Origin: Thalia democratica
Taxonomy: Eukaryota
DNA length: 64,000 bases
Reading direction: 5' to 3'
Assembly: GCA_965202585.1 (NCBI GenBank)
Contig: OZ241830.1
Coordinates: forward strand, 21,204,001 to 21,268,000
In this document: piece by piece, positions 550 through 47,005 of the stretch
How the letters are laid out: each line of letters opens with the position of its first letter
Numbering within the stretch: the stretch's first letter is position 1
Notes under the pieces: model-generated
The model's input: only the letters and a program-made list of their open reading frames with translations
Databases searched by the model: none
What the model was told of the DNA's origin: nothing
Program-made: the position numbers and the translations under genes

Positions 550-3500
550 GTAAGTTGATTTAATAAGTTTGATGTATAGTTTATTTTAAGTTCAACTACA
601 ATAAGTGTCAATTAGATATAAATTTGTCCTTTAAACTTTGACATTTTTTTAATTTAAAGAATTACTGCAAGTAAATGATGGTATATAAAAACTTTTAATT
701 TATGTTATTAATGGGAGTAAATATTTGTTTAGAGATTATCTTTCAACCTTGTGTCCTAGTAACGATACAAACAAATATTACTATAGATTGCAACAAAACT
801 TTTTTTTCCTAAAACAAACCATCAAAAAGTGGCTGTAATACGTAGCCCTTGTGAATGTACGACATACCTTGTATAAAGCTATTTCAAAAAAACTTATAAA
901 ACTATAACTTGATTAGACATAAAAATAACATGTAAATTTTTACAACAGTAAAAAATACATTTTAAAATCTTAAAACTTATTTTTTCCTCTTTAATGTTGA
1001 TTTTCGTAACTTCTTTATTAAAGAACAAAAGAACTAACATAAACTTTTGTTATATTCCAGAATATATAATTCTAAACAGTGTTAAGTTAGCTTTTAATTT
1101 AAAAAAACTTGGTGAGCATTATTATTTATTACTGCTCACTAAATGTTAGGACACTCTAAATTTTTCTAAAAGTCGTTTAGTCCCAAAAAACAATAGTATA
1201 GTTTTGGATTATTAACTTTTTTAACTTCAATTATTTAGATGAGTAACGTATAATTAAAAAAATTAAAACAACTTGCATTTAACATACAAAGACACTAAAG
1301 TAGATAATAAAACTAAATCCCAGTAATTTCACTAAATTAAATTATTTAAGCAAATCACATTGAATTGAACATTTTAAAAATGTGTATTTACTTCATGGTT
1401 TGACAACAAAACTTTTTAAAATCTATGTATTTTCATTTAAATATAATTTACTAATTGCTTCAAAGATTTTCATCGTTTTGCAGTGTGCATAGTAAATTGT
1501 TAATAGTAAATTTATGCTAGCTAAACTTTATATTATTATTTTTTACATAAAAAGTAAGATGTTTAATGTTAATTTTTATCTAATCTATGCAATTCACTAA
1601 AATTTGCTAAGAAATGTATACAAACAGCTTTTTAAACATGGTAAAATAGGCTATATGTCTGTTTTAGAAAATTTATTCCGTTCAATTGCATTTTTTGTTT
1701 TATATATATTACAGCAGTATGAAAACATACATATTTTGCACATGTTTATTTTAAGCCTGTTTATGAAGCATGTATAAATTCAATGTGAAACTCATAACTT
1801 TATTGAAACGACACAGGAGACAACTGAAGGGAAGGTTGACTACGAGTCGATAGAGTTCAGTTATCCGACGCGTCCCGATGTGAAGGTTTTGAAGGGGTTG
1901 AACGCGAACATCAAACCCGGCCACACGGTGGCGTTTGTCGGTCAATCGGGGTGCGGAAAGTCGACCTGCGTACAGTTACTCGAGAGGTTCTACGACCCGC
2001 TGAAGGGCAGAGTTGTTAGTTTGAAGATATTTTTTTTTGATGTCGGCAAATATTTAAAGTCTTTGGTTAAGTTTAAAAGAGGTTGTAAGTACTAAAACTG
2101 TTTATTAAGTTTTAACAACTGTTTAAACTTAAAAAAAAAGAAAGCTATGATAATTAAAATAACAACGTTTTAAGTATGATTTTACTCGAAGCTTATGTTT
2201 TGAAAAACATTTTTTTAGAAACTTTTTTATATCTTAAGTATATTAGATTAAAAGCGATAAAAACAAATCTATCAAAGAAACAAAAACAACTCAAGTACTT
2301 TTAGTGTTCATGTTATATAGCAAAAGGTATATCGTTTTTGTAAAAACTTTTGGATACAATGCTTAATTTTATTTTAAATACTATGAAGTTTGAAAAAAAA
2401 AACTTAAGTCCTTGACAAGACGTTTAAAATGATTCTCGTGAACCAAGTCCAAGGACCAAATATTATGAGCGTATTTTTGTCATTCGACAATTTATAAATT
2501 ACATAAGCTTAAAACTTTACCGAGTTTAATTCACGTTTGATTAAACAATAAAAAACAGTTAACACTTTATGACTTACAATAAAAATTTTCAGATGTTGTC
2601 CGATGAGGATCTGACGACGATGCAGGTGAGCAACCTGCGCAGCCACATGGGGATCGTGTCCCAGGAACCCATACTGTTCGACACCACCATAGCGGGAAAC
2701 ATCAGGTACGGGGACAACGGCAGGGTGGCGTCGATGGAAGAAGTGGTCAAGTGCGCCAAGGACGCCAACATACACGACTTCGTTAACGGGCTACCCGAGG
2801 TTTGATATTATTTTCTGTTGTATACTAATTATTACAAAAGAAAGCACTCTGTTATAAGTTTTGTAAAAAATGTTCAAATTCATATTGAGCTCTGTTAGTA
2901 GATATTTTTTTTTTCAAGAGACAGTGTTGTGCACGGTTGTTTAACTTAATGTTGAAATTAGTCGTCCAAAACAGCAAATACTAAGTAGAAACTTATTATG
3001 AAGCCTTAAAAAGACTTTAAAGATTAAATGTTGTTCAGGGATACGAAACGAACGTGGGATCGAAAGGTGCTCAGCTGTCAGGAGGTCAGAAACAGAGAAT
3101 CGCAATTGCCAGGGCTCTGCTCAGAAATCCGAAAGTTCTGTTGCTTGATGAAGCCACCTCTGCCTTAGATACCGAAAGTGAAAAGGTAATAACTTGTCAA
3201 CATTATATTTAGTTAAGTTTCTCGTTGACTGTCTATAATATATATATACATCTATATTAGGGGTGGGCAACGTACGGCCCGCGGGCCGGATCCGGCCCGT
3301 GAAGTGAAAATAACCGGCCCCCAAACCTTTTTTAAATTTAAATGGAATCCGGCCCGCGGAAAAAATTGATCCAATATAAATATTACAAAATTTGTACAAA
3401 ACCTTTTTAGAATTAATTTAATAATACAAAAATGTAAGACTTTGACCCTGAAAAAGTTTGTAAAATTGGTTTTTTATTTGTGTGGTGATAAAAACACTTT

Positions 3501-5425
3501 TTTGTTTAAGTATCTTTTTCTGTTTCAAGTCAGTTGAAGCAATCCTTTCTCAAATTATCTAAAAACAATTGTTTGCTAAACTAACTTTGATGATCTTACC
3601 TACCATGATAATTTTCATAAAAAATGGACATGTTAAAAATTGCTGTCTTTTTTAACCAAGATTATTTTAAGTCCAAAAAACCCAGATGTGTAGTGAGTTG
3701 TTTTTTATACTTGTTTAGAAAAGTAAAAAAAGATTTTTAAACATTGACAATTATTTAAAGTAAAACTGCTCAAAATTAAATTTTAGTAAATTTTTTTAAG
3801 TTGAGACTAAAAACTGCACTCTTTTCTGCTATTATTTTTTTTTTTTATTAATGACTTTTTGATTAATTTTATGGTTAAGTTTAGTGATGACCAATTGATG
3901 ACAATAGTTTCACTTGATAATGAGTTTGGTCGTCGTTTCGCAGACTTTCAACAACTAATAGAAGAATTTGATATTGTGTCTTCATAGTTGACGTTTGACA
4001 CCGAAAATGCACCTAGTAATATACAGTTACAACTGCTAAACTTCAATGTGACAGTACACTAAAAAAAAGTTCAAACCTTAAATTTTAACAGATTTTATGC
4101 CCTACGTAACAAGTCAAAGTTTGTTAATTTAAAAAAGATGGCAATGAAGTTACTTGTTTTGTTTAGGTCTATATAAACTAAGTGTTTCATCAAGATATTT
4201 TAATTTTATTTTTTCGCTTTTTATGGTAAAACTGTTTATTATATCAAAATTATTTGTTGTTTTGTTTCTTTTATACGTGCAAAAATCTGTAATGAATCTT
4301 AAGTAGTTTGTTTAAATTTAAAGGTATTAGTTTTATTTTGTAATAGTATTTGATAGTTAACTTCTGAATAATATTATTAATGAAAACTCCAGCCAAGAAT
4401 TGCCAAAATTATATAATTTCGAATAGTTAACAATCTTTTAATGTTTTAGCTTGAAATATTAGGCTCAGGTATTTTTTAGTAAGTAAGTTATTGTTTTTAT
4501 AAGACTAACTAGTACTAATTCGATCCAGAGCTATAATAAATATATAGTTATGAATACTTCATAAAAATTAAAACAAAATTTTATACTTGAGAACCTTGGT
4601 AATTATTACATTGATTCAAAATTCTGATATACACGATAAATTAGCACCCAGCCGGATCCAAATCTTTTTCAAATAAGCTTACATTCGGATCCGGATCTTT
4701 GTCTAAAATTAGTATATAGCCGGTTCCGGATAATATTTACAAATTAGGATCCAGCTGAATCCGGTAGATCGCTAACTCGAAATACTCCGGCCCGCTGAGG
4801 ACTTTTTTTTTTGGATCCGGCCCGTCAACTATTTACGTTGCCCACCCCTAATCTATATATACATATATATGTATAAAATAAAAATCAATAAATCAAAAAA
4901 AATTTCTTAAAGAAAATGTAATAAAAGAGATAATAACCTATTACTAAAAGCATATAACTTAATTTTCGAACTTATAAAAAGTGAGAATTTAGTATAGTAA
5001 ATGTTTTTCAATAGATATACAAAGATTACCTTACTGATTACTTATTGTCTATAAAAGCTTTGATAGTTTTTTGTATTGAACTACTGAAAACTTAAAACAG
5101 TCCCATTGACTGTTGTAATACTTTAAGTTCTTAACTTTAAACCACTAATTTGGCAATTCATTTAAATAATAGCAAATGTAATCTAATCGCTAGCTGGCAT
5201 ACCGAAACTACTATTTTACTCAAACAGATCGTGCAAGCGGCCATCGATCGAGCAACGGAGGGAAGGACGTGCATCGTCATCGCGCACCGGTTGTCCACCA
5301 TTCGCAACAGTGACGTCATAATGGTGATTGAGAACGGGGTGGTAGTGGAAAGCGGAAGTCACGACAAGTTGCTTGAACTGAAGGGAAGCTACTTCTCACT
5401 GGTCAACGCGCAACTGAATCACTGA
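393..5425 (+). CDS. ABCB1: ABCB1/MDR1 (P-glycoprotein)-like transporter, 3' part: join(393..549,1817..2014,2593..2799,3039..3185,5228..5425); 5' exons lie left of the window
   Basis: Spliced translation gives last TM helix ([14 protein letters not shown]), Walker [11 protein letters not shown]-loop VSQEPILF, signature LSGGQ, Walker B/D-loop [12 protein letters not shown]-loop AHRLSTI, stop TGA. All introns GT-AG with matching phases. Exon sizes 157/198/207/147 match those I recall for human ABCB1 exons 24-27. The symbol is family-level; ABCB1 vs ABCB4/5 orthology is not resolved. Confidence 0.93.
1817..2014 (+). CDS. ABCB1: ABCB exon (NBD2 Walker A)
   Basis: CAG acceptor, GTTAGT donor; [10 protein letters not shown]...GQSGCGKST...RFYDP. 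Confidence 0.93.
2593..2799 (+). CDS. ABCB1: ABCB exon (NBD2 Q-loop)
   Basis: TTTCAG acceptor, GTTTGA donor; [16 protein letters not shown]...[12 protein letters not shown]. Confidence 0.93.
3039..3185 (+). CDS. ABCB1: ABCB exon (signature, Walker B); not in the ORF track
   Basis: [49 protein letters not shown], then GTAATA. Confidence 0.95.
3258..4850 (+). mobile_element. Non-autonomous hAT (Charlie/Spin-like) DNA transposon in the last ABCB intron
   Basis: TIRs TAGGGGTGGGCAACGTA / TACGTTGCCCACCCCTA; perfect 8-bp TSD ATCTATAT (3250-3257, 4851-4858); GGCCCG-rich subterminal motifs. Confidence 0.92.
3885..4175 (+). pseudogene. Decayed hAT transposase C-terminal (dimerisation region) fragment
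   Basis: Reads [10 protein letters not shown]...[20 protein letters not shown]...[11 protein letters not shown] with a stop and frameshifts; resembles the C-terminus of GTF2IRD2/Spin-type transposases. Confidence 0.6.
5228..5425 (+). CDS. ABCB1: ABCB terminal exon (H-loop)
   Basis: CAAACAG acceptor; [25 protein letters not shown]...NAQLNH*. Confidence 0.95.
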
Positions 5426-7234
5426 TGATAAATTAATATATGTTTGACTGTAGTAGAGAAGAAAATAATTAGTCTGAGTTTATATTTTAATTGTAGATCT
5501 AATGAATCCTTTGGAAGGATATGTTACTTTGTTTTATTTATTCTAGTACTGTGTCAAAGTTTGTCTCTTCAGCGAAAAAAAGTAGTTTGTGGTTTAAGTT
5601 TTAGCTTATTTTATTTATTCTTCATCAAGGTTTACTGTAAAGACACGTTTCATTCTTTGATCAACATAAAATAATTCAACAACTTTTTTTATCATCTTAA
5701 AAGTAATGTAACAATGTATGATCTATTTGAAAACTTTTAAAGTTCCTTCTTCACTTATTTAATCTTAGATTTTTCATGACAGTTTACTGAAGTTGTGCCA
5801 ATATTTTCAACACAAAATGACTTTATAGCTTTATATTAAGTTAATTTTTGTTAGAAACCGTTTTTTTGTGTTAAATGTGATGCAGTCTCCAAATTTAATT
5901 GATTAATTTATTTAGTTGTTTCTGCAGTGTTACAAACTTTTTTAAGCTGACACGAATTTCTTTAATACTTTTGTCGCACAAACAGAAATCATCTAAAATA
6001 TATTTGTTTAAAGATCGTTTGTATGTGGTATTTACAGCTAACTTTGATTTAGGAAACTAAAAAAACCTTCAACATATTCTTTCCGCGTAATAATTATTTA
6101 ACGTTTATATACGTCTTTAAATCATAAAAGTTAAACAACTTTCTTTATAATAAAAGCTGTGTTCTTGTACTTAAGTCTATTTACTGAGTAGAAGACAACA
6201 TTTATGAAATAGAAAGCACTTTACTTAATTTCAAAAACTTAAATCAATTTAAAGATTAATTACTTCAAATAAACAGTGTAAAAGTGTAGATTGTGTGTAC
6301 AAGTCGTATGAAAACATTAACTATTATAAGTATAATTATTTTAAAAAAACTTTGTCAAAATGTACATTTGTTTTCAATTTTTCACGGTTTTATACTACTA
6401 ATATATCAATTTAGGTTCGGACAATGTTTTTTGTGCAAAATTCTCAAACGGGCGGGATTTGTTCAAAATTGTGGTTTATAAAATTAAACTATAAAGAAAA
6501 ACTCAATAAGTCTTAATTATAATGAAATAATCATTTTATGAATACAACGGTATACTTAATATCAAATAAAAACATACTTCCGAATATTTTGATTAATTTT
6601 TTTTTTCTTGGTTTTAAGCAAGTTGACTTATGCTAAGAAATACATCGCGGACCAGACACTTTTGCTTGGCAGACCAGCCCTTAAACGGACTAAGATTAAT
6701 GCCTAATTGTCGGTTTTGAAATCAGTTTACTAAAGTAAGAAAAATTGCATTGTTTGAAAAACATCGTAAGTAAGTAAAGTTAAGTAAGTTTGTGTAGGCT
6801 AGTTTATTTTTTACAATTTTTGTAAAAGTAGTTGTAGAACTTTCGTGTGATAACTTAAAATAAAAATGTTTAGGTTTTTAAATTATAAGATTTTTATAAG
6901 GATTTCAAAAAAAAGTTGTTTTGACTCGTTTTAAAAACTTTGATACGTTGATCAAGGATCAAAAAGACAAAGAAATATCGATTTAGCCCAACAGCTTTAT
7001 ATAACTTCTTTTAATACTGATGTTTTATAATTGTTTGGCGGCTACTTGTCTGCATTATAAGCTTGCGACGGTATTAATCAATAATAGTTTTATCTCAATA
7101 TAAAAGAAGTTTTTTGACTACCAAAAATTGTTATCTAATGATAATATACACTGTTTTCAAAAAATAAAAAGTTTAAAGAAACAAGGTCGGTTGTGTTGAT
7201 TATTTGCTATAGTAATATCTAAAAACGGTATACT

Positions 7235-7844
7235 ATCAAAATCCACCCGCGTTCAAAATCCACCCGATCAAAATCCACCCGCATTCAAAATCCACCCGAT
7301 CAAAATCCACCCGGTTCAAAATCCACCCGATCAAAATCCACCCGGGTCAAAATCCACCCGATCAAAATCCACCCGAGTCAAAATCTACCCGATCAAAATC
7401 AACCCGAGTCAAAATCCACCCGATCAAAATCAACCCGGTTCAAAATCCATCCGATCAAAATCCACCCGATCAAAATCCACCCGAGTTAAAATCCACCCGA
7501 GTCAAAATCCACCCGATTAAAATCCACCCGGTTCAAAATCCACCCGATCAAAATCAACCCGACTCTAAATCCACCCGTTTCAAAATCCACCCGATCAAAA
7601 TCCACCCGGTTCAAAATCCACCCGATCAAAATCAACCCAACTCTAAATCCACCCGTTTCAAAATCCACCCGATCAAAATCCACCCGGTTTAAAATCCACC
7701 CGATCAAAATCAACCCGAGTCAAAATCCACCCGATCAAAATCCACCCGAGTCAAAATCCACCCGATCAAAATTCATCCGAGTTAAAATCAACCCGAGTCA
7801 AAATCCTACCGACACAAAATCAACCAAAGTCAAAATCCAACCGA
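7235..7844 (+). repeat. 15-16 bp minisatellite, unit (N)TCAAAATCCACCCG, roughly 39 units
   Basis: Alternating ATCAAAATCCACCCG and GTTC/AGTC variants, decaying at the inner end. Confidence 0.97.
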
Positions 7845-8484
7845 ATCGAAACAAGCACCTTGTTTATTTATTTCTTTTTAAATCAAGTATCATTTAAACA
7901 AATCTCACCACTCTAAAGTACCAATCTTAAACAAGTATTATTTAAAAAACACTTATAAAATCTTGTATTTTTGTCCCTTATAAATTGACTTAAGAATATA
8001 AAAACTGTACTACAGATTGAACTTATTTTGTGAGGTTTTTTGAGTTGTTATTTGGTATTTTTGCTTATTATAAGGAATTTTTGACAAAAATATTTTTGTT
8101 TTTTTGATTACTGAATATAATTTTGAATAGCTACAGCCGGCAAGCAGTTTTTAAAGGTACTGTTGTTTTTGATATAAGTATAACTATAAGAGCTAATAAA
8201 AGTTTAACAACGTCAGGATAAATAAATTAAAGTTTTACTATACAAATATTATTATGTTAAAACTTTTAGAAAACTAAAGGATGTGCCAGAAAAAATAATC
8301 TTGTATTATCTCAATCACAGTTACACGACAATCAATTATAATTTACTGTTTCTAGGTATAAAATTTAATAATTTAGAACTTTTAAGTAATTTTTAAACAA
8401 ATACGTCACACGATATAATTTTTATAAAAACTGAGTATTACAAGTGAAAGCTACCATTTATACTAAAAATTAATCCATTTAATT

Positions 8485-9363
8485 TAGGGGTCAGCAAACT
8501 GCGGCCCTCGAAGTGTAAATATGTGGCCCTCGAGCATGTAAATTTGGTCAATTAAACAAAACAAAATTGAAATTGAAATTTTCAAAAAAGAAAAAGAAAT
8601 TATAATAGTTTGTTTTTAAGTTTCTAAATATCATTTAAAAATCATTTATTATGCTTAAGCCTTAGATGTGAAAAAAGACAGATAGTAAATCTAGAAGTTT
8701 TTCTTTAAAGTTTAGACTTTACTTTTCCTTTTAAACAACAAAAGCTTACGTACTTGGATAATTTATTATATAATATTGCAAAGTTTTTTTAATTGGCAAT
8801 TTTACATGTTTTTAACTTTTAAAAACACGGTGACTGGGTTGAAGTAACTGTTGTACTTTTTTTGTTTCAAAAAGTTGCAACCCGAAAAACTTTAGATAAA
8901 TTATTAAGGTATTTAAAGGTTTTAAAAGAAAAACTTACACTGTTTAAAATGAAAGTATTAATATTTGTTTATATTTTAACTAGTTTAACAAAATCACTAA
9001 AATTTTAAATACGTGATATGCTGTGCATTAAATAGAAAAAGATTTTTTTTAACTACTAAAAAGAAAATACAAATAAAATAATAGAAATTGATTATAAAAA
9101 GTGTACATAATGATCTACACCTGTTTTTAATGATCTACACCTTGTAAATAATGATAGAAATAATAATATGACACAAGTTTTTAAAAAAAATAGTTTTCGA
9201 CTTTAGAAAAAAATATACATTTTAAATATGCCAGGTCTGATCCCTTTAAGTAGATAAACGTGACTAAAACAGATTAAAAACAAAAATTGAATAAAACAAC
9301 GGCTCGCGGAAAAAATTGAAACATGAAATTTGGCCCGAGATAAACAATTGTCTGCCGACTCTG
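8485..9363 (+). mobile_element. Old hAT MITE nested in the Foldback-like element
   Basis: Ends TAGGGGTCAGCAAAC / GTCTGCCGACTCTG; GGCCC subterminal motifs; degraded TSD ATTTAATT/ATTAAATC. Confidence 0.6.
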
Positions 9364-11848
9364 ATTAAATCCAACTGCATCTTCGTTACTTTTAATTACA
9401 AAAAAGTAAAAGGCAAACGTTTAAAATTCATTTAGTTTGTGTTTTTTTGTTATAATTTTTTTATGTCAAAGGTCTTAACAAGATATTTATCTATAAAAGT
9501 TCTCTTTGTTAAGAAAAGGTCACTAATTTACTTTAGATAGTTACCTTTACTGTATTGCCATTTAAAGATTTTTCAATATTAACTTTCAATTAAATATTTA
9601 TTAATTTTCGGTTTTATTTGTTAGACAAAATTTTCACGCTTTTAAAGTTAATTTGTCTACTAAACAATTTGTTATAACAATAGTTGTCTTTACCGTTTAA
9701 ATTCGTTATAACCAATATAAAATTTTGTTTAATTTTAATATTGTTTCATTTTTTATTAAATTACTTAAAATTTCTTAAGTTTTAACAAATGGACTTTTTT
9801 TATATGAAGATTATATTTAAAAAAAATAGTGGTAAATAATAACATTTTCATTTCTATGAATTAAAAAATATCAATTAACAATATAATATTGAACAGTAAA
9901 TAATAATTTATCTTACTTAATTACAATTTCTATGCAACTTTATATTTATAAAAAAAACATAAAACGTTTACAACTAATTAATTAAAAACATGCAGTTATA
10001 GCTTTTAACTTAAATTGTCGGAAATTAATTCAAGAAAATTTATCGCATGTAAATTAAAAGTTTTAGATTAGACAATTTTAAATTTAAAATTTAAACGTTA
10101 ACCAAAGGAGATTAAATTTTATAAAACCACTTAATTAATCACTTTCAAAACTGGCCTTAACCTATTAATAAAATTAATAATACGATTGTTTAAGTTGATA
10201 CAGTCTGGTACAAAAATTCATAAAAATAACTTATACTTGAATTTAAACTCTCTTGTCTGAAATACATACTTTTTTTAATGAACCTATGTAAAAATAGAAC
10301 ATTTTAATAATAAATTAAAAATGTTAAAAGTTTTTTTTTCGTAATATTTGTTATAATTATAGTGTCATTTTAAAAAAACTCATCTTATTTGTTTACTACT
10401 ACAATTCTAAAGTATATAATTTCCCTAGCTCAAGTCTAACTACTAACTTTTTTAGTTGCAATTTACAAGCTATTTGAACAAACTCAATGAATTGTAGAGT
10501 CGATATTTGTTTTATGTAAAGGACTTTAAAATTCATAGGAAAATGTTTAGCTTTTTAATTTGTACTATTAGTTAAAAACTAGCAAATTAAGTTGTTATCT
10601 AATTAAAAATAACTTATAACTTTAGTTACTTTAGACGAAAATATTTTTAGTTTTTTCAAAAATAGGTGGTTTATAAAAAAAACATTTAATAAAATAAAAT
10701 TCAATTAACTTAAACACTTTGAAAAAAAGATAATAGCAGCTAAAATTATTGTATAAATTAAAAAAAAATAACTAAAAAATATTTGTAACAAAAATTAGAT
10801 AGAAAACAATGAAATTGTTTTAAAACAGTTATTGATTTCTTACATATTCCTCATTTATATTTTTAGTAAATTAGTTTTCGTATTTTTATATTAAAACTTA
10901 TGTTCTGTTTTTAAAAATTACTAATAAAAGAAACGTCAATAAATTGTTTACTAAACGACAAATAAAAGCGCTCAAAATATTTGGTCCTAAGTCCTCTTGC
11001 ACGAACATACCTTAAAGTTATCGAGTCGCACACCAAAAATATCTTTTAACGTCTTTTCCACGTCGAAAACAATAATTTTTAAAATATAATTAATAGGTGA
11101 TAGTTTTTCTAAATTTAACAAAGGATTTTTATTTTATTATCACGTAGCAATTTTATATTATTCTTTATCTATATTTTATTTTTTATAAACACTGTTAGTT
11201 GAAATTTTTTGTATAATAAAATATTGTATGTAATACTATTTTGAAATTTAAGTAAAGCACAAAACACAAAACTTTTTACATCAAAAAAAAAAAGCTCAAA
11301 AATTTTATATTAATATTTTAATTTTCTTTTTGTAACATTTAATTAACATTTTCCATAAATTTACATTATTTGGTATTTGATTTTTGTAATTTTCTTTAGC
11401 TTAATAAATGTTATTAAAGATTCTTCTAATTTATAAACTTCTATAGTTTGATATTTTAATTTACTATGAGTTATCCTTAGTAAATATTTTTATTTAATTA
11501 TGATTGACTTTGGGAAATTAAATTAGAAGGAAGTTTAAATGGATTGAAACTGAGCGTAATTCTTTTTTTATTTTTTTTTAACTTCTTTTTTTAAAAGTAA
11601 CACCAACACTACTAACATTAATAAATTATAAACATTTTAAATACTTGTAAAGCTACTATGAATTTTTTTTTTAATGCTGTTTAATTATATTGTTTAACTT
11701 ATTTTTTTAACTATTTTATTAAATAAATTAAAATTTCTTTCTTTATAAATACTTACTCTTTTTTATACCAATAGTTGTTTAAACATATAACTTTATTCAA
11801 TATTACAAAATTCTATTAGAAATTAATTCTTATTTCGAAAAAAAATGA

Positions 11849-12366
11849 ACTCGGGTTGATTTTGATCGGGTGGATTTTGAACCGGGTGGATTTTGAACCG
11901 AGTGGAATTTGATCGGGTGGATTTTGACTCGGGTTGATTTTGATCGGGTTGATTTTAATCGGGTGGATTTTGAACCGGGTTGATTTTGATCGGGTGGATT
12001 TTGAACCGGGTTGATTTTGAACGGGTGGATTTTGACTCGGGTGGATTTTGACTCGGGTTGATTTTGATCGGGTTGATTTTAATCGGGTGGATTTTGAACC
12101 GGGTTGATTTTGAACGGGTGGATTTTGACTCGGGTGGATTTTGACTCGGATGGATTTTGATCGGGTGGATTTTGACCCGGGTGGATTTTGATCGGGTGGA
12201 TTTTGAACCGGGTAGATTTTGATCGGGTGGATTTTGACCCGGGTGGATTTTGATTGGGTGGATTTTGACTCGGGTGGATTTTGATCGGGTGGATTTTGAT
12301 CGGGTGGATTTTGATCGGGTGGATTTTGATCGCGGGTGGATTTTGATTGCGGGTGGATTTTGAACG
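11849..12366 (-). repeat. Reverse-complement array of the same minisatellite, roughly 33 units
   Basis: CGGGTGGATTTTGAT units; CCCGC-type variants at the outer end mirror the left array. Confidence 0.97.
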
Positions 12367-14544
12367 TGTCCCCTAAAAACAACCCAAAACTAATTGTGGT
12401 AAAAAATAAAATTACAAAATAGAATTCTTTTTAATGTTGAGTGGTCACATGACAATTAAAATTTCGACAAATCAGATTCTAAAAAATATTTTCAAGGGCC
12501 ACAACACAAAAAGTTATATATAATTGGAAAAATGCGTATATAAGTTTAACTAATACCTACAAATGCTTTTTTGTTGTTGAAGGTAAAAAATTACTAAAAA
12601 AGAATTTGGTAAAATACTAAAGTTACTATATTTAATACGTTTTTCAACCATATCCTCCGAAATACTTTAAATTTTTCAAATAGTATTTCTGAGTGTTAGC
12701 TAGACCTAAATACGCAAATTTATTTTTATTCGAGTATACTTTACTTTTTGATTTTTGGCCCGTTAAAAAGTATCTTAAGAAATAGAGTTGTCGGAATTAG
12801 AATAGTTCGAATTTGAATAGCTGGGCTCTGAAAACTTTTGTAGATGTTTTTTAATAAAAATTAAATTACGTAAAATAAATATTTTTTAGTTTAATTATCG
12901 ATTTAAATTTAAAATAGATTTTTTTTAAACTACACAAAGTTTTACATCTTTAAAGAACTAATTCTCACATGTTTCCTAATTTTTATCAGTAATCGAGAAA
13001 TGAAATTAATTTAACATATGTTGTTTGCTTTTTTAAGAAATGGCTTTTCAACTGGTCTTAGTAATTAATTTCGAAATAGAATTTAAAATAAATTACTATT
13101 CAATACTTTTTGAATTAACTCAAGCATCCATTTTCTTAATTTTAATTAAAAAAATCTAGAGTATTTAAAAACAATTTTTTTTGCTAAAATCAAAATTAGT
13201 GAAACTTGATGTATACAGCTGGTAATTTAAATTTATTTTAACAACCACTATACATACAAAGTTTGTTTTACACTTGGTCGGTACAATTGTGTGTTCACTA
13301 CAATTGGTAAAAAATAAAAGCTCATTCATAAGTTGTACATACACTAACCATAAAAGCAATAAAAAACATTTAAACAATTACAAAAAAAGCCATTATAGCC
13401 AAAGTAACCCTCGTAACAAATTTTTGCTGAAAAAACATTAGAGAGTTTTGTAATGGTGTATTTTATTGCATGCTTCCATTATATATTTTTAAATTTCAGA
13501 CCACAACGTATACTTTTTATATAAATCGTTTAGTACGGGAGTTTCAAAGACAGCTTCATATAATGCTAAACCAATTATTAGAACATTAAAAAAATTTGTT
13601 TAATCAAATCAAAAGCATTTTATTTAACTAGTTTGATTTTTGGCTCATTTTTAAAGTAATATAGATACATAAAAAAGACCGATGTTTATAGTCTTATGTG
13701 GCCAATTTTCTAAATTGTTCATTTTAGTAGCCTCACGTCGGTTGAAGTTTAAAATTTTTTTATTCTACCCTTTATAAGTACAAAACAATAAAAGTTCTAT
13801 AACAAATGATTGTTGTCTTAAACTAACACATTTAATGATTTTAGGCGTATATGCTGTACGTTATAAAAATACAATTCTCTACATTTTGTTGTATGTACTG
13901 TTAAATATTTAGTTTATATTTAATATTTAACAAGTTAAAACATTATAATTTAAATTTTAAAAATAAATTAAAATAAAAGTCAAAACTCTTTTTTTTGTTT
14001 GTGATTATTTAAAAGTAAAAAAAAATAGTTTATAAAATATTTTATATTTAACTAAAATCTCAATACCTTAAATTTATAAACGTCAACAAAAAATAAACAC
14101 ATACTATTTTTAAATAGTAATTATTTAAGTATTACTAAACAGTATTTATATTTATAGAATTTGTTACCTCTTCTTACACAGTTTTATAAATGAAAAAGTA
14201 TAAATTAAAACCTTATAAGTTTAGGTTTAATTTTGTTGAATAGTTTAATACATGTTTTGTGTTGATGTTTTAGTATTTAAAGAATATTAAAAAAAAAACT
14301 TTGTATTTTTTTAGCGACATTTACTTTTATAAATAAGCAACTAATTTTTGTATAAAAATTAATTTTTTTAAAATGTAATGCATCATTATTTAAGGCTTAT
14401 TAAAATAACAGAAACTAAAATTTAGTGTAAGTTGAATTGAAAAGAATTGTTTTCCTAAGCAGAAGCATTTTAGACAACTTCACATGAATATTTTATTAAA
14501 AAACATTGACAAATGTCACAGATACTTTTATAAGTTGTTTTTTT

Positions 14545-14745
14545 TACCTCGAACTCCAGCTAGTAAAACTTGAACATTAGGTTTATACAGTTGCTACCGT
14601 TAACGATTAGCGATGAGCAAGTTAATAAAAAGATTTATAAATAAAAGATTAGATAACAACGCTACATTCGCAAATAATCATTTTTTTAAGGCGAGGTGTT
14701 AAGGTAGTAATTTGATTGATAACTTGCTTGGTTTAATTTGTAATT
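14545..14745 (+). repeat. Conserved non-coding block, third copy of 51355-51550 / 42210-42420
   Basis: Shares ATTAGATAACAACGCTACATT and TTTAAGGCGAGGTGTTAAGGTAGTAATTTGATTGATAACT. Confidence 0.85.
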
Positions 14746-17669
14746 TATTATCTTGTTTACTTTTACTTGTCTTTAAAATTAAATAAGTTTAAGATATACA
14801 TTTTTACTAAAATCAATAAAGTGTTTAATAACAATGATGTGCTTTTTGTAAAAAGAATAAAGTCACACTTTAGTTGACATTTCTTTTCAAGTACTTAACG
14901 AGTTTAATTGTTCTAAAAGCCGACCAAAATCTGTAAAAAAAATCAAAAATAAGTATATTCACAATTTTTTTTACTCAAACGTATTGACTTTACATGTATC
15001 TTGTTTTTATAAAGTTCATTTAAAATTGTATTATTTTTATAGTTTAAATAAGAACAAAACTAAAATTTAGGATAAAATTATTTTAAAAAACATTAACCAC
15101 AGTATCTAAGTTCTTAAAACTGTAATAAATATTGTGAAAACACAGATCTTTCCCTTTTTTTAATAAATTCATTTATGTTTTAAATAAAAAAAACATTATA
15201 CCTTTTATGAAATTAAGAAACTTATAAAGTAAAATACGAAAATAATATTATGACTACTCAAAAAGTTTAACTCTTTTTTAAATATACAAAAAATTAGCGT
15301 AAACTTTTCTTTTCAAGGTTTTTCATTCATTAGCTATAACTACTTTGGTTTTAATTTTCACGCTTCAGAAAAATTGTCAACTCTCAATAAGTATTTTAAC
15401 AACCTAACATAATTACTGAAAAACAAACGAAAAAACATAAATTAGTCACTTTTTTGAAGTAGTTTTGTTGTCTAAATCGAGATACGATAAATTTACTCGC
15501 TAATATCGTTTTATCAGTTTTCAACAAAGGAGTTTAAGAACATGACAACTTTTATAATAGTAATGTTCAAGTGTATCTATTGTCTTTATATATTGTGAAT
15601 ATTAATTTAGAACCTTTATAGAAAATGAAAACTATGTGATTTTAAATTAATGTCTTATCTTTTAAAGTTTGTAAGTATTCGTGTATAACTATAGCTTTTG
15701 GTAAATGTATTAAAAAAATTATCAAATGTTGTATATATTAAATGGTTTAGATTGAAAATTAAAAAATAACTAAAATTTTGAACTATAATTAGATTCTAAT
15801 ACATATTATAGTAAGTTTCGTTAACAGGTAAATAGCTAGTTGTGTACGAAAAATCGGCTTTAATAACTGTACTCTTGTATATTTTTATGCAAAATGTTTT
15901 TGTTTTGAATGCATAAATGAAAAAAGATATATCTAGGTATAAACACAGGCATAAATAATGTTTCAAATACGCTTTTTTAACAACACATTTTTAACAACAG
16001 TCTATTGTAAATAAATCGAAATATATAATAAATACTCGGATGCTATTCTTAAATGTTTTGTTATTTTCACTATATATCTCCAGAAACATTACTGAAGAAT
16101 AATAAGGTATAAAAACAGTTTTTCACTAAAATAAAAAAATATTATTTAAATGCTAATACTCATCTTAAATAATCTTAATATATCTTAAATGCTAATAATA
16201 ATAAATAATAGTCAATAAAGAGACTAACAAAAGTAGAAAAAAAAAAGTCTTGTAAGAAACAAATAAATTCTACTTTTGTTAGTATCATTAATGACTGATT
16301 AGCATTATAGACAACAGTATAAGATACATATCATTGATAACTATGCTAGTCTCAGAAGTTGTAAATGATAAAACTTCATTTTTACTTGGATGTGATGAAG
16401 TTTTTAATTGATTCTTAGTTTATTAGAATATTTGTTTTTTAACCTAAATTTATGAAAAGTACTCAGATACTCAGTCTTTGAGGAGTACGGTATTATACAA
16501 TCTAAAAAACATTAATACACTAACAAAATTTAATCTGTACTAAAATTAGTCTGTTAATTTTTACTAAATAAAACATATATATGGTGACTTTGTGACATTT
16601 TTTTGATCAACTGTTATTTACAGTTATTAGTGCAAACGTATTTTTAATTCTAGAAAGTATCTATAGGTAGAAATAATATTTCTGTTTTATCAATTTAGTT
16701 ACACTGAAATTATTGAGTCATTTTATAAGACGTTTAGTAGTTATAATAAAGAAAATGCATAAAGAACAACTAGGTTGTAAGCTTTTTAGAAATAAAAATT
16801 TAAGAGAAAATAAACTTGAGTTTTTAAAAGTTTTCTGTCAACTCAAAACAATAAACTACTAAATTTGAATAGTTCATTTTAGATAAAACTAGAAATTTTT
16901 AAGTATGTTAAATACTTTTTCTTGTTTAACTAAAATTTTAACCTTAAGATTCATAATCATTATAATGTTAATTTAATTTAGGTTTCATTTTCATGATACA
17001 ACATGTAGTAATACTATTTTTTTAGGTTTTCAACAATAACATGAACTTGCTTTATTTATCGAAATTTTGAAGGGTATCACTAATTACTTTATAAGGCTTG
17101 TTCTTTTCTAACTATAACTTTTTATAACTAGCTTTTATGAAGTTTAAATGAAGTCTTTATGAATTTTAAAACTTAATGCAGTTTTATTTAAAAACAAGTA
17201 AACTAAGAAAAATAAACAAAAAGTAGACAGTATCGTTGAAATAAACTTTATTTTGATGTATAACTCTTGTTAAAATAAAAAAAATATTTTAAATATACAA
17301 TAGATTAGTTTAAAGTGATCGAAGTCACAATGCAATAGACACAAGCTAAATTTAAATAGCTAATTAGAAACAAACTTACAAACTTTTGTAAAAGTTTTAA
17401 TCTTTTTGAATTTAGTAGTTAATTAGTTTTTAAATTTTTATTAGTGATAATGGCTGTAGTAAATGTTTTTGTACTCAGTTTGCATGAACTCTTTATTATT
17501 AGGAAATATTTGTAGAAATTTAAAACGATTATATTTTTTTTATATGTATATGCTTTATAGTTTAAGCTAGTTTAATTTTTACGTTTTTCTTTAAAGTTTT
17601 TTTTAAATCTCTAACTAAGTTTAATCAGTTGATACTTTTGTATAACTGTGTAAGTAAAGAAGGAAATTA

Positions 17670-17865
17670 GGTTTAAGAAAACGAGCTTAACGTCTGCACA
17701 AAAGGAAACCTCTTTTTTAACATTAGGTCATAAATTAGCATAAACTTTTCCTTTCAAACTTTTATTATTCTTTGGCGAAACCTTTATTGATTTTATTCAA
17801 AACGCTTGAGAAAAATTGTCAACACTTCATGAATATTTTAATAACCAAGCATAATTGTCTAAATA
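17670..17865 (+). repeat. Conserved non-coding block, copy of 57355-57560 / 35680-35885; older copy at 15290-15420
   Basis: Shares AAACTTTTCCTTTCAAACTTTTATTATTCTTTGGCGAAACCTTTATTGATTT. Confidence 0.85.
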
Positions 17866-18806
17866 AACAAGTATTTTAAAACAGATATTTCAAACTGTTG
17901 CCATAAAGTAATTTAATTTGTAATATATCCATTATCAAATGTAACGTACTATATCACTTTGTTGAATAATATAGCAAAGTTATTCAAATTCAGATGCTTT
18001 TTGATACATAGTTTTAAAAGTATGCAGAAAAGGTATAACGTTTAGTTTAGTTTTAAATTAAAAAATATTCAACTTATTTTCAATAGTTAGTCTGTCTACA
18101 GCTTGATTAGTTGATTCCGCTTCTTATATTTATAATTTAATACAAAATTAAGTACTTTTATGCTTTCCTAAAATAAAAATTTAGATGTTACGTTGAAGTG
18201 TTACACGCTTTGAATATTGTTATGATCAGCAGTTTTTTAAGACTAGAAAAAAATACTACACACTCATTGTTCATGGTTTAAACTTAAACTTTAACTAAGC
18301 ATGAACAACTTTTAAGATAATACTTTCAAAACAATTTTATTGATCGTTTAAAACTGTTCAACAATGGTTTTTAGAACTATTCATTGCAAAAGGATATATT
18401 TAAATGGGTTTCAGAGCTTCCAACTTTATTTTGGAAAAAGTTCAAAAGTCATTAATAATTAGGATTCTATTTTGCAGTCAAAGAATTTTTTGTTCGATTT
18501 GAAAATAGCTACTCAACAATAATGCACGCAAAAAAATAAAACAGTAAGTTTTTAGAAGTGGATTAAAGAAAAACAATAAAGTTATTTTATAAATAAGAAA
18601 TCTCAATTGCTAAACAAACTGCATGTAAAACTTGATTCATTAAAAAATAAAAATATAAAAACTATATTTCTTGCAACTAAACTGTTATTACATCAGCGGA
18701 TGTAATTTCAAATGTCATTTTGTGTCAAAAAAAAAAACTATCCATAATATTTAAATAAGGCCAAGACAGTATTTTATTTTTCGTTTAATTGCAGCAACTT
18801 AATTGC

Positions 18807-18905
18807 AGCAACATCTAAATACTAGCCATAATTTTAATGAAATCACATCAAATTATGGGCATAATTGATTGCAGCAATTCTACTCATAAAATAGTGCCCA
18901 TAAAA
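18807..18905 (+). repeat. CCCATAA-motif piece, also found in the palindrome spacer (46727-46825)
   Basis: Gap-free alignment of about 100 bp with about 9 mismatches. Confidence 0.85.
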
Positions 18906-20602
18906 AGACCGACCCTTTTAAACTAGTCAACAATATTTAACCTAAACCTATAAGGTTTATAGTCACATTTTTTTTATAAAACTCTTTAAGAAGCGGTATA
19001 AAATTTTATAAATGTGCTTTACTGTTAATATTGTAAAAGATTACTAATTAGAAATTAAAATATTAAACTTTGCTACAAACTTCATTTTGTTAATTAGTTA
19101 ACTTTAATCTCTTCTAGGTAAGAAAAAACTCGGTGTTTGTTAGAACTACGTACATTACATATTGTTTTAAGCATTAAATAATACAATGAGTTATGGTCAA
19201 AAACTAAATGCCTTAATAAGATACTTTAAGCTACAATAAATAATTAACAGTTATATCAATGCTCTGACCAAGCAAAATAGTGGTTTTAGTAAATTGCAAT
19301 GAGTATATGGAATATAATAAGAAAATATTGTTTTTTATATTTAAATTATTTAACGACTAAAACTTTGTTTGTACAAACAATATACTACATATTTAGTACA
19401 ATTTAATACTATTGAAGTGATGCATACGATTTTTTTTGATCGAATACTAAAGGTTTTTTATCAGTCAAAAATTAACAAACTTAACAGTAAATTCAATTAT
19501 ACAATACATTTTAGAATTTATTTATTAATATAAATTTTTGATGACCAGTTTAAAACTTTTCATAAACAGTAGGAACATAAAGCATCAAAATCAAAAAACA
19601 GTTAGAGTGTTGTATGTTTTATGTAATATATACGTGATATGTAATAAAAACTAGTTTTTCATTAAGTTGCTTCTTAAATAAATGGTTGATTTTATAACTT
19701 AACGGTTTTATAGTAGACCTTAAAGTTTTTCCTAGACTTTTTAATGATTCAACAAACTGTAAAATCTAAACAGCTTAATCTTTCACATTTGTGCACGACT
19801 AACAAAATTCCGATAATTTAATTTAGATATTTTTAAACGGCCACAACTCAATAAGTAGTATATATATTTATTTTAAATTGCGAATGTAGGTTTAATTTAT
19901 ACCTATAACAACTTTTTTTTTGAAAAACATTAAGTATTTTTAGAGATATGATTATAAAAAAGTAATGATATATAGTAAATTTTAGTATCTAACCAAATTC
20001 TTTTTGAAAAAGATTCATTTTTCAAAAACAAACAAGTGTTTGTAGGTATTAGATAGACCTAGTTACGCGTTTTTTCTCAAATATATGTATATTACTTTTT
20101 AAATTGTCGCCCTTTGAACTTTTTTCAGGGTTTTGTTTGTCAGAGTTTAATTTGTCCGAATTTGAGTTGTCATGTAACCACTTGAAAAAGTTAACAAGTT
20201 CTATTTTACATGTTTATTTTAAAAAAATATTTTTTTTAATAATTTTTTAATTAATAATCAACACAACCGACCAACCGTGTTTCTTTCAACTTTTAATTTC
20301 TTAAAAAATGTGTTTAACATTATTCAGACCTTATTAATGTGTACTCAACAGTAATTCTTTAAATGAAGATTAAATCATTATTTTTAAACATCATCGGTAA
20401 TTTATGATGCAGCTAAGCAGCCGCTAAATAGTCAAAAATCCATAAAAATTAAAGAAGTTTCACTAAACTATAGCAGGGGAGTGTCTATACTTTTTCAGTG
20501 TGAATGCATAACTTTTTGTTCAATAATAAAGTACAGTAACCTGTCACTTAGATACGCCGATTGAGTTTGCACTTTTTAGCTAAAAAACAATGTGTTCAAT
20601 TA

Positions 20603-20850
20603 AAAATAAAAGTTGCAAGTTATGTAGATGATGTCCTTGCAAATCTTACTTAAAATTTTAATTTCCTCAACATTTAAGTATATTTCTTTAATAAAACAAA
20701 ATTTTATAAGTAGTTTAATCTAACAAAACTAAAATGTTATTTCAACTTCTACAGTATCATAAATATTATAAAACAATGTTATTTTAATGTGTACCTTGAT
20801 GGTGTAAGGGTCCTAATGATGGTTATTTAAATTCTCTGGGTTAATCATTT
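20603..20850 (+). pseudogene. Possible highly decayed LINE reverse-transcriptase fragment
   Basis: KIKVASYVDDVL (YxDD), later NKTKMLF and FKF/LG(L)I with frameshifts, in RT motif order. Confidence 0.4.
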
Positions 20851-21854
20851 TAATATCTAAAACCTGTCATTGGTTATTTGTATAGAAAGTATTATTTTAA
20901 CAGAAGTTTCAAGAAAATTTTGAATTTTCGCTACATTAATGTAGTGGTCAAGTTGTTAAAATATCATAGTAAGTTTCTAATAAGCTATAAGAATCAAAAC
21001 TTTAAAAAATATTGTATATGTGTTGACTTTGAAACATTCAACTCAACTTCCAGTTGCTTTGTAGTTTGAAGTGATACGGTTTGTTTCTTGAAAATTTATT
21101 TTAAACAAAAAATAAGCGTAATTAAACTTTATTTATTACATTAAACATTTTTGAAGTAAAATAGTACTTAAAAGTCTAAAATAAATGCATAGCTACTGTT
21201 TAAATACATTGAATAGCATTTTATAATGGAAATCTTAAGCACCTGAGTAAAAAGTCAAACTTTAAAACATTAATTCTTTATGACATCACAACCGAATTTC
21301 AAATTTAAATATATTTCAGCTCATGTCAGCTCAGCTTATAAAAAATCAAAACACTACAAAACAAATAGATAGCCAATTTAATTAAAAATTTGGAAACCAC
21401 ACCACAATAAATGCAAAAAGCGGGTTTCTTACATAAATTAATTTCTTATTAAAAAGCTATAAAGGTCTTTTTTTGATAAAAAGTTGGCACAATTTCAGAA
21501 ACTTTGATGAAACTTTTTAAACTTAAACATGCAAAAAAGGAACTTCTAAAGTTTTAAAATATATCATACATTGTTACATTACTTTAAAGATGATGAAAGA
21601 AAAAATTGTGATATTAATTTATGTTCATCAAAAACTGAAACATGGTTTTACAGTAATTATGGATTAACAACAACAAAAATAAGCAACAACTTAAAATACA
21701 AACTAGTTTTGTTGGTTGAAAAAAACACTTTCACACAGATTTATAATACATAATACAAAGTAACAAATCTTAAAAACGATTCGTTATACTAACAAAAAAT
21801 AGTTTTACAAGCTGTATACTTCATTATCACCTTAGTACTGTTAACTAAATTTAT

Positions 21855-22058
21855 CTATAAACAGTGGTTCAGCTGCGCGTTGACCAGTGAGAAGTAGCTT
21901 CCCTTCAGTTCCAGCAACTTTTCGTGACTTCCGCTTTCCACTACCACCCCGTTCTCAATCACCATTATGACGTCACTGTTGCGAATGGTGGACAACCGGT
22001 GTGCGATGACGATGCACGTCCTTCCCTCCGTTGCCCTGTCGATGGCCTCTTGCACGAT
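21855..22058 (-). pseudogene. Orphan duplicate of ABCB terminal exon, open frame ([12 protein letters not shown]...NAQLNHCL*)
   Basis: CTCAAACAG acceptor retained; 9 nt differences in 195 coding nt vs 5228-5422 (7 synonymous, 2 replacements) plus TGA>TGT stop loss; no intact upstream ABCB exons on this strand. Functional status uncertain. Confidence 0.8.
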
Positions 22059-22730
22059 CTGTTTGAGTATATCATTATTGTTGTTGTGACATCTTTAATA
22101 GGTTTTGCTTACTTTTAGTGAGTTAGAATTATTTAAAAAAAATTAAAAACAAAGTATTAACGGGTAAACGACAAACTTTATTGACTAAAGTTTTGTAATA
22201 GTCAGTTAGAACATTTTGATTTTCTTAACGTTTGATACAACAAAAAAGAAATTGTAATTATTAAATGTAGCTTAAAACACTGTAAACTAATCAGTTTATT
22301 TAAATAATAATAAAAGTGTGAAGTAGCTAATCTACTTTTTACCAGGTTTCAGTAAGAAAAGTGCCGACTTTGTCAAAAACTGAAAAATCGTAAACTGCAC
22401 TGAATAATATCCTTTTTTTGCAGTTTACTAAAATTTTAGTATCTGACGAGATCAGAACTTTTTTATACTGAGACCTGGTAATAAATAGAGTACTTAGTAA
22501 TTAGTTTTTTTATTTATTTTTACAACAAGCAGTTTAAAAGTTTCAAAAACTATAAGAAGTTTTAAAGTAATGTTTTATACCAACTTTATTTAATAATAAT
22601 TAAACATTAAAACTTTATAAATTTAACATTAAAAAGAAGTGTTATATAAATAGATAAATTTCTTTCAACTTGATTCCTTATAAAAAATTGCATCTGATCA
22701 AAAAAAGTTTTTAAGTTAGTTCATGTTTAA

Positions 22731-22736
22731 TTTATT
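22731..22736 (-). terminator. Candidate poly(A) signal for the left protocadherin
   Basis: First AATAAA on the minus strand after the stop at 22989; low specificity in AT-rich DNA. Confidence 0.35.
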
Positions 22737-22791
22737 GATAAAAGCTATATAAAACAATAAAAAAGAACTATATATACAGTTTACAAATTAC

Positions 22792-22920
22792 CTTTTCACC
22801 TTCGGTATCCAGCACAGAGGGAGCGTCATTCAGAAACAGAGCTTTGGGATTTCTGAGAAGAGCCTTGCCGATTGCAATTCTCAGTTTCTAACCTCCTGAT
22901 GGCTGGGCACCTTTAGATCA
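22792..22920 (-). pseudogene. Decayed duplicate of ABCB signature/Walker B exon
   Basis: [41 protein letters not shown] then GTAATT donor; 25 differences in 129 nt, no indels; 5' part of exon missing. Confidence 0.9.
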
Positions 22921-22988
22921 ATTGGGATTGAAACGTTAATCAGATTAAAACTAAGTCCTTCTGTACTCCTCCATCTACTTCACACTAT

Positions 22989-23311
22989 TCACGTGCTAGT
23001 TTTTGGCGAAACCCTGTTGTCTTCGTAGCTCGACAGCTTAGATTTCATAGCCAGCGACAAGTAGTTCTGCTGGGAAAAACTTCCGCTCGACTTGGAAGAC
23101 TGCGGGAACGAAACCTCGCTCGGGTTGGACAACCTGCCGATCGAAGTTGAGTTTGTGACGTCATAGTTGAAACGAGGGTCGTAGTAGAAGTTGTTGGGTT
23201 TGTACACTTGGGGTCGCGACTCATCGTAAGGAAGGGTTTTCGGCTCGCTGCTCGATATTGACTCTTCTGGTAAGTGTTGGAGATGAATCGTGTTTCTATG
23301 AAGCTCGTTTG
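22989..23311 (-). CDS. Left protocadherin exon 18 (Ser-rich tail, stop)
   Basis: AACAG acceptor, phase 1, open to TGA; GC-rich like genuine coding sequence. Confidence 0.8.
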
Positions 23312-46484: not shown

Positions 46485-47005
46485 TAAATAATTTATCATT
46501 GAATCAAAGTTTTTTGCTCAGCTCTAAGGCATGTAATTTCACTTTCTTTAATATTTACATCGAACAAACAAAAAGTCGAATCTGGCGGGTATAAATACAA
46601 AAGTATTACAACTTATTACAATGTCACTCATAAACGTAATTATCTTCACTTTTGGCGCACTTTTAACATGTTCTATGGTAATTGCACAAAATACTACACA
46701 AAATGACATTTGAAATTACATCCGCTAGCAACACCTCAATACTACCCATAATTTTAATGACATCACAGCAAATTATGGGCAGAATTGTTTGCAGCAATTC
46801 TACCCATAATATAGTGCCCATAAAATACTACCCATAAAAATTCCTACCGCTTTAACACAAGTGAAAATTATTTTGTTTATGAGTGACGTGGTAACAAGTT
46901 GTAATATTCATACCTATCTGACTCAACTTATGTATAGTCGATGTTAGTATTGAAAAAAGTGAAATGACATGCTTTAGAGTTTAGCAAAGTACTTTGATTT
47001 AATGA
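46485..47005. repeat. Palindrome centre: two back-to-back P-block copies (46485-46732, 46855-47005) around a CCCATAA-motif spacer
   Basis: 46600-46728 aligns directly to 32490-32628 at over 90%; 46855-47005 aligns to 59935-60100. Confidence 0.85.

Follow-up and report, generated by a model that had tools for sequence, protein, structure and literature searches.

A truncated copy of an ABCB-type transporter gene facing its parent in Thalia democratica: the probable edge of a segmental duplication, later reoriented within a cadherin cluster

Truncated unprocessed gene copies are common at the edges of segmental duplications. Inverted duplications and triplications, for their part, are generated by template switching, as described for DUP-TRP/INV-DUP structures (PMC11293582, PMC4352052) and for ODIRA (PMC10766183). 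Here we describe a 64,000-nucleotide stretch of Thalia democratica (contig OZ241830.1; hereafter the window) that resembles both. In it the 3' end of an ABCB-type transporter gene (copy 1) is faced, tail to tail, by a fragment of the same gene (copy 2) lying behind a cadherin gene (A); a further fragment in direct orientation (copy 3) lies behind a second cadherin gene (B), and a third cadherin gene (C) follows. Like truncated copies at duplication edges, the ABCB fragment keeps an intron and downstream DNA, begins abruptly within an exon, has no promoter, and lies where two copies of a duplicated unit meet, with a first pseudo-exon that appears to be decaying neutrally; unlike them, it was recopied in inverted orientation, faces its parent, and retains one exon that is ~95% identical. 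Like DUP-TRP/INV-DUP and ODIRA products, the locus has the ABCB fragment in the order direct, inverted, direct, and two cadherins head-to-head; unlike in those products, the cadherins run inverted, direct, direct, and one junction, which we term J, is reused in two orientations. A single-event inverted triplication would have two junctions only; the locus has four, of which three are distinct and J occurs twice. The cadherin order and the reuse of J hence require at least two events.

The window is gap-free, with 25% G+C, and is numbered 1-64000; positions outside this range are window-equivalent. We added 40 kb of flank to the left and 70 kb to the right (174 kb in all) and combined self-BLAST of the window, an extended self-comparison including the flanks, homology searches against the whole 802-Mb assembly, tblastn, Pfam, and Rfam; an Rfam search of 1-24000 returned no match. 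Short-read contigs of one sample, none of which spans J, served as an assembly check.

Self-BLAST recovered five reverse-complement high-scoring segment pairs: 3058-3214 with 22919-22766 (80%, E 1e-33), 5217-5950 with 22069-21331 (80%, E 1e-177), 7003-7204 with 20459-20253 (71%, E 5e-17), 12403-12798 with 20220-19806 (70%, E 4e-37), and 14106-14248 with 19055-18918 (77%, E 9e-22). Their coordinate sums are 25977, 27286, and 27462, followed by 27479 and 28017 once an insertion in the left arm is subtracted. A transposon in the last intron of the parent gene (3234-4875) causes the shift of about 1.3 kb at the penultimate exon, and a Foldback-type element (7227-12372) that of 5.1 kb. The five pairs form one collinear anti-diagonal with indels, that is, an inverted segmental duplication. 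The original prediction, made from the window's letters, had proposed just such homology over exon, 3' untranslated region (UTR), and intergenic DNA, and the chain, whose right arm occupies 18918-22919 on the minus strand, confirms it; the three coordinate pairs on which it was based (the exon starts 5228/22058, a pair at 7.2 kb, and a pair after the insertion) were all recovered. It had placed the left start of the homology at 5228; the chain is indeed collinear from there, but it begins at 3058, inside the penultimate exon. The estimate by eye of about 70% non-coding identity, and with it the old age, is in line with the measured 69-77% between the arms, the 3' UTR and downstream DNA at 5426-5950 being 72% identical to the reverse complement of 21331-21854. 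The segments of the two arms are as follows.

5426-5950, plus strand: left arm segment b, ABCB 3' UTR and downstream DNA, unique to the locus
7003-7226, plus strand: left arm segment c, unique DNA ending at a transposon target site, with no copies elsewhere in the genome
12403-12798, plus strand: left arm segment d, an old copy of a palindromic family resembling miniature inverted-repeat transposable elements (MITEs)
14106-14248, plus strand: left arm segment e1, the last anchor common to the inverted copy, 77% identical to 19055-18918 and ~78-79% to copy 3
18918-19665, minus strand: inner end of the inverted block, inverted e1 and segment k, matching this locus only (e1 in copy 1; k and e1 in copy 3)
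19806-20459, minus strand: inverted copies of segments d (MITE-like) and c
21331-21854, minus strand: inverted copy of the ABCB 3' UTR and downstream DNA

An anti-diagonal of this kind could in principle be an artefact, either of chance matches between dispersed repeats or of a fold-back misassembly. One of the five anchors (12403-12798 with 19806-20220) does belong to a dispersed MITE-like family, with at least 723 candidate copies, and the assembly check comes from the short-read contigs of a single sample. Yet that anchor too lies in the collinear position, and the remaining four, with E values from 1e-17 to 1e-177, have no copy elsewhere in the genome, so that the self-comparison gave a collinear anti-diagonal with four unique anchors and not the isolated dispersed-repeat hits that would have spoken against the duplication. 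In the genome-wide search, 20236-20470 and 18915-19400 had no match outside the locus, and a query of 5100-6000 found only three homologues, all in this locus and within 66 kb (the parent gene, 22069-21331 on the minus strand, and 70350-71092 on the plus strand), besides two weak matches to a paralogous ABCB terminal exon on another contig. Misassembly is not credible because the arms differ by 20-30%, which is not expected of an assembly chimera, and the short-read contigs reproduce the assembly exactly over 18878-21001 and 22188-22895, which covers most of the right arm. We thus regard an artefact as very improbable. A hairpin at 16206-16238 and 16268-16301 was considered as the palindrome centre, its coordinate sum being as expected, and was rejected, the surrounding DNA belonging to a direct-orientation collinear block.

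The parent is a full ABCB-type transporter gene with an intact 3' end, assigned to subfamily B by architecture and similarity only. In tblastn, residues 34-1272 of the full-length protein P0002 (1272 aa; two ABC_membrane and two ABC_tran domains in Pfam) align collinearly over -12246 to 5422, so that both nucleotide-binding domains (NBDs) lie in one gene, with NBD1 at -5916 to -4031. The best ABCB-type homologues in a representative protein search are 55-60% identical, and the penultimate exon is 82-86% identical to NBD2 of the full-length ABCB-type proteins P0001, P0002, and P0005. The Walker A, LSGGQ, Walker B, and H-loop motifs of NBD2 are all intact; Pfam searches with single exons, which are too short for the profile, gave no match. 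The features of the 3' end are given below.

1880-2005, plus strand: Walker A exon of NBD2
3039-3185, plus strand: penultimate coding exon (LSGGQ and Walker B), open frame, acceptor AG at 3037-3038, donor GT at 3186
3234-4875 (~1.6 kb), strand not assigned: dispersed transposon in the last intron, with 63-bp inverted ends
5228-5425, plus strand: terminal coding exon, stop codon included

The intronic transposon, with at least 1952 candidate copies in the genome at 80-91% identity, is not present in copies 2 and 3, and this accounts for their shorter last introns (727 and 762 bp vs 2042 bp in the parent). Upstream of the gene, a 2.8-kb direct repeat (-30995 to -28199 and -18001 to -15198) was observed at 84% identity.

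Copies 2 and 3 lie directly 3' of cadherins A and B, respectively. In both, homology to the parent gene begins at 3058, 19 nt past the start of the penultimate exon at 3039, and the transition is identical to the base: the cadherin stop codon and ~70 nt of 3' flank pass at J into the ABCB penultimate exon minus its first 19 nt. In cadherin C the 3' flank is shared up to the J point and then gives way to unrelated unique DNA, with no J. The fragment features are the following, copy 3 as a whole (plus strand) occupying 69460-70553, 5.5 kb beyond the window end.

22920-22991, minus strand: junction J, cadherin A 3' flank (70 nt after the stop codon at 22991-22989) abutting the ABCB fragment
22792-22919, minus strand: dead penultimate exon of copy 2, without its first 19 nt
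22059-22791, minus strand: 733-bp counterpart of the last ABCB intron in copy 2, with GT at 22791-22790 and the AG before 22058 both kept
21855-22058, minus strand: orphan terminal exon of copy 2, frame open, stop shifted by two codons
70356-70553, plus strand: orphan terminal exon of copy 3

Copy 2 has the marks of an unprocessed pseudogene: the intron is kept, there is no poly-A tract, the flanking DNA was co-duplicated, and disabling changes are present. Its penultimate pseudo-exon has an in-frame TAG at 22890-22888, found without differences in independent short-read contigs as well; LSGGQ reads PSGG-stop, and the Walker B DE has become ND; the corresponding exon of copy 3 has one stop, LSVSQ, and a Walker B D-K. 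Between the two, the proportion of differing synonymous sites (pS) is 0.30 and that of non-synonymous sites (pN) 0.29 (pN/pS 0.97), a ratio pointing to neutral decay after duplication. Both copies retain the donor GT of the dead exon; the acceptor AG survives in place in copy 2, and in copy 3 an AG lies 3 nt upstream of the homologous position. A tblastn search with full-length ABCB-type proteins detected no other ABCB exon relics in the 174 kb, only the parent gene and the two-exon fragments, and no ABCB-like sequence was found within 31 kb beyond cadherin C. A hairpin-RNA locus (a source of endogenous small interfering RNAs) built from the inverted fragment is unlikely, given the 16 kb that separate the arms and the sense orientation of copy 2 behind cadherin A.

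The DNA downstream of the fragments is informative about how they arose. The stretch from 3058 to 18724 is collinear, in direct orientation, with 69460-77821, which leads from copy 3 into the region upstream of cadherin C, and the collinear segments downstream of the ABCB gene and of copy 3 are unique to the locus. Inverted copy 2 stops at e1 (18918), and both direct copies extend 4.4 kb further, through segments e2 to f. Because of this direct collinearity, the apparent spacer of the inverted repeat is best read not as a palindrome loop but as old intergenic DNA between an ABCB gene and a head-to-tail cadherin. Some segments are missing from single copies (c and d from copy 3, k from copy 1, b2 and e0 from copy 2), and the pattern agrees with a single ancestral order (b, b2, c, d, k, d2, e0, e1) from which individual lineages lost segments. 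Identity in e1 is 77-79% in all copy pairs, and in the 3' UTR it is 61-72% across pairs. The intergenic DNA and the three cadherin genes are listed here.

14249-18724, plus strand: ABCB-cadherin intergenic DNA (the so-called spacer), outside the inverted copy, 74-81% identical to the DNA between copy 3 and cadherin C
22989-46726, minus strand: cadherin gene A, which makes up most of the inverted block (Pfam Cadherin domain, E 9e-11)
46856 to ~69421, plus strand: cadherin gene B, extending past the window end (Pfam Cadherin domain) and followed by fragment copy 3
77889-102791, plus strand: cadherin gene C (Pfam Cadherin domain)

Cadherins A and B stand head-to-head with almost no spacer, such that A and copy 2 are mirrored by B and copy 3 about 46.8 kb. 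Identity is 83-92% between B and C and 70-88% between A and B; the 3' halves of all three genes are 85-95% identical, introns included at 85-93%, with pS ~0.1. When the A unit (22920-24400) is compared with the copy 3 side of the B unit, identity is 82-93% on the cadherin side and 61-76% on the fragment side, dropping exactly at J. This drop, together with the homogenised 3' halves, points to concerted evolution of the cadherin 3' halves.

Taking these findings together, we propose, as the history that probably though by no means certainly applies, a tandem segmental duplication that carried a truncated ABCB fragment, followed by the placement of an inverted copy of cadherin plus fragment. The three copies, their common junction, the collinearity, the decay, and the transposons are observed directly, and it is the order and the mechanism of these two events, along with gene conversion, that we infer. 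The ancestral order would have been the ABCB gene on the plus strand, ~10-13 kb of intergenic DNA, and a cadherin gene on the plus strand. In the first step, the unit duplicated in tandem would have started 19 nt into the ABCB penultimate exon and ended 70 bp beyond the cadherin stop, with J as the joint, giving ABCB - cadherin - J - ABCB 3' fragment with intergenic DNA - cadherin. The order B - J - fragment - C in direct orientation, with the flank of C unbroken and unique from the J point, is that expected of a tandem-duplication joint; since the same junction occurs in copies 2 and 3 and is absent from C, J most simply formed once, in this way. As J lies inside an ABCB exon, the fragment (partial penultimate exon, last intron, last exon, and downstream DNA) would have been incomplete from the outset, with no promoter of its own. 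In the second step, a cadherin, J, and the first ~4 kb of the fragment, as far as e1, would have been placed in inverted orientation between the DNA downstream of the ABCB gene and the next cadherin, either by inverted duplication or by an inversion within a three-unit array, leaving copy 2 tail-to-tail with the parent gene and two cadherins head-to-head. Thereafter the non-coding DNA would have diverged by 25-35%, the pseudo-exons decayed with the gain of stops, transposons inserted, a Foldback-type element among them very recently, and the terminal exon been homogenised by short gene-conversion tracts.

The original prediction had instead envisaged a second ABCB gene that once faced the first and was truncated inside its penultimate exon. 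The copy is indeed old, inverted, and tail-to-tail, and it does end inside that exon; what the data do not support is a complete facing gene, given the J shared with direct copy 3, the unique flank of cadherin C, and the direct collinearity of the spacer. On that view the facing gene lost its 5' part, and copy 3 arose later as the mirror image of copy 2 within the cadherin palindrome. Since cadherin B with copy 3 mirrors cadherin A with copy 2, copy 3 could derive from copy 2, and in the 3' UTR copies 1 and 2 resemble each other slightly more than any other pair does. However, copy 3 has 4.4 kb of ABCB-downstream DNA beyond the end of copy 2, leading into cadherin C, which it could not have obtained from copy 2; further, since intergenic DNA adjoins the upstream regions of both cadherin A and cadherin C, an ABCB gene and a cadherin must already have stood head to tail in the ancestor, and from that order a tandem duplication explains J in one step. 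We therefore give little credence to a complete facing gene, and the copy facing the ABCB gene was most likely already a fragment on arrival and never a complete gene at that place. A second full ABCB gene, in tandem and not facing, might still have existed had a larger tandem duplication taken in the whole ABCB gene and cadherin and had J been made later, by a deletion that began 70 bp beyond the cadherin stop and reached 19 nt into the second penultimate exon. The shared junction, the downstream collinearity, and the unique flank of cadherin C would be equally expected. Such a history nonetheless calls for one additional event, a deletion that, with the gene extending from -12246 to 5425, would have removed at least 17 kb, and no 5' ABCB exon relic was found anywhere in the 174 kb; it is unlikely, if somewhat less so than the complete facing gene.

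Several observations weigh against the two-step history that we prefer. Cadherins B and C are closer to each other than are A and B, the opposite of what is expected if B and C split first and A derived from B. Either B and C would have been homogenised later, which is plausible, or the inversion would have taken place in an array that already had three units. In the 3' UTR, copies 1 and 2 (72%) are closer than copies 2 and 3 (61%), for which differences in rate or conversion between the facing arms would be needed, and the three fragment copies are about equally diverged, so that the order of events follows from structure and not from distances. Finally, both junctions of the inverted block carry direct partial copies of one young transposon, which no model that we tried explains cleanly.

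18725-18912, plus strand: end fragment of a high-copy transposon at the left junction, without its last ~25 nt, at ~3000x single-copy read depth
46727-46855, plus strand: another fragment from this transposon family, at the right junction of the block, without its first ~82 nt

These two fragments, from a family with >1300 candidate copies, flank the 27.8-kb inverted block in direct orientation. Each is ~5% from the family consensus, with no private substitution in common, and by this measure they are far younger than the arms. The ~100-bp repeats within them (18807-18905 and 46727-46825) were considered as a relic of the rearrangement and rejected: they are ends of the transposon family, ~5% from the consensus and with no shared private change. 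Next to the fragments, 31 bp of the old intergenic DNA, from immediately 5' of the cadherin, occur in direct orientation at the left junction (18694-18724) and inverted at the opposite end of the block (46696-46726). Inverted duplications at inversion breakpoints are known to arise via staggered breaks (PMC1885836), and the 31-bp repeat resembles such rearrangements, but the transposon fragments are left unexplained by that model. Among models for the second event, inversion between inverted repeats, staggered-break inversion, fold-back priming, and circle excision with re-insertion were each tried, and none fits both the 31-bp piece and the direct transposon fragments.

Conversion between genes and their pseudogenes is exemplified by CYP21A2/CYP21A1P and GBA/GBAP1, and the ABCB terminal exon shows a comparable pattern, an exon-limited island of near-identity in diverged flanks with synonymous sites equally conserved; unlike in those pairs, the conversion events and their direction are deduced here from the pattern alone. 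From acceptor to stop codon, the three copies differ at 7-11 of 201 nt (~95% identity; 11 between the orphan exon at 21855-22058 and the parent exon), as against 28-54% difference in the adjacent non-coding DNA. Copies 1 and 3, 65 kb apart, are identical over a core of 161 nt, and 6 of the remaining 40 positions differ. The terminal exon has a pS of 0.09-0.155, compared to 0.39-0.46 for the parental penultimate exon against its two copies, and its synonymous sites are as conserved as the non-synonymous ones. Protein-level selection alone would leave synonymous sites diverged; hence, short gene-conversion tracts with the constrained parent exon are most likely to keep the terminal exon alike in all three copies. 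One might suppose that the orphan exon behind cadherins A and B is itself also kept by selection, as a spliced 3' UTR or alternative terminal exon of the cadherin transcripts, for which the retained splice signals would leave room, or as an element coupling cadherin and ABCB regulation, a notion that we consider rather improbable. Purifying selection on it was considered and set aside: the two pseudo-lineages have four synonymous and three non-synonymous changes, which is not significantly non-neutral (binomial estimate ~0.05).

The insertion that interrupts the left arm belongs to the world of Foldback-type transposons, whose inverted ends are internally repetitive, as in Drosophila FB, Galileo (PMC3573991), and Tetris (PMC4079207).

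7227-12372, strand not assigned: young Foldback-type transposon, 5146 bp, with inverted arms at 7235-7843 and 11851-12363

The length inferred originally, 5145 bp, was off by a single base. With FB, Galileo, and Tetris the element shares repetitive arms, a target duplication of a few base pairs, a large number of nearly identical copies, and the lack of a long internal open reading frame (ORF). The arms (~0.5-0.6 kb) are inverted arrays of a 15/31-bp tandem unit, and the 8-bp target duplication, CTAAAAAC, lies at 7219-7226 and 12373-12380; copy 2 retains the empty target site. Long inverted termini of tandem subrepeats, a target duplication, and a high copy number are thus all present. The genome holds >30 full-length copies at 97-99% identity, which marks the element as young, among at least 2844 candidate matches. 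No ORF of at least 90 aa was found in the element outside the right repeat arm, which contains the only one, and the internal part has 21% G+C. The target duplication of Drosophila FB is 9 bp and that of this element 8 bp; its resemblance to Foldback is one of structure.

Further observations concern the cadherin cluster. Two segments of the ABCB-cadherin intergenic DNA, 14511-14785 and 17651-17868, recur within this locus only, in the same order and orientation in introns of all three cadherins (e.g., 51343-51593 and 57344-57561 in B), and these recurrences may be the relic of a still older cadherin copy. A short match (75%) to a segment of cadherin B at 114810-114960 suggests a further, more diverged cadherin gene ~12 kb past cadherin C.

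The locus is a product of ordinary gene-cluster evolution and brings to light neither a novel class of element nor a novel mechanism. In annotation, 21855-22919 is best labelled a pseudogene fragment in or behind the 3' end of cadherin A instead of a portion of an ABC transporter. The seeming remains of a facing gene make better sense as one edge of a segmental duplication that afterwards changed orientation, and the case shows how misleading the picture from one window can be. The most noteworthy parts of the locus are the orphan exon, for its conservation, and the unusual junctions that bound the inverted block. Read in this manner, the locus would present a dated series of events, running from an old tandem duplication, through an inverted copy and homogenisation limited to an exon, to the very recent insertion of a Foldback-type element, and it could serve studies of gene conversion and cluster growth in an AT-rich genome.

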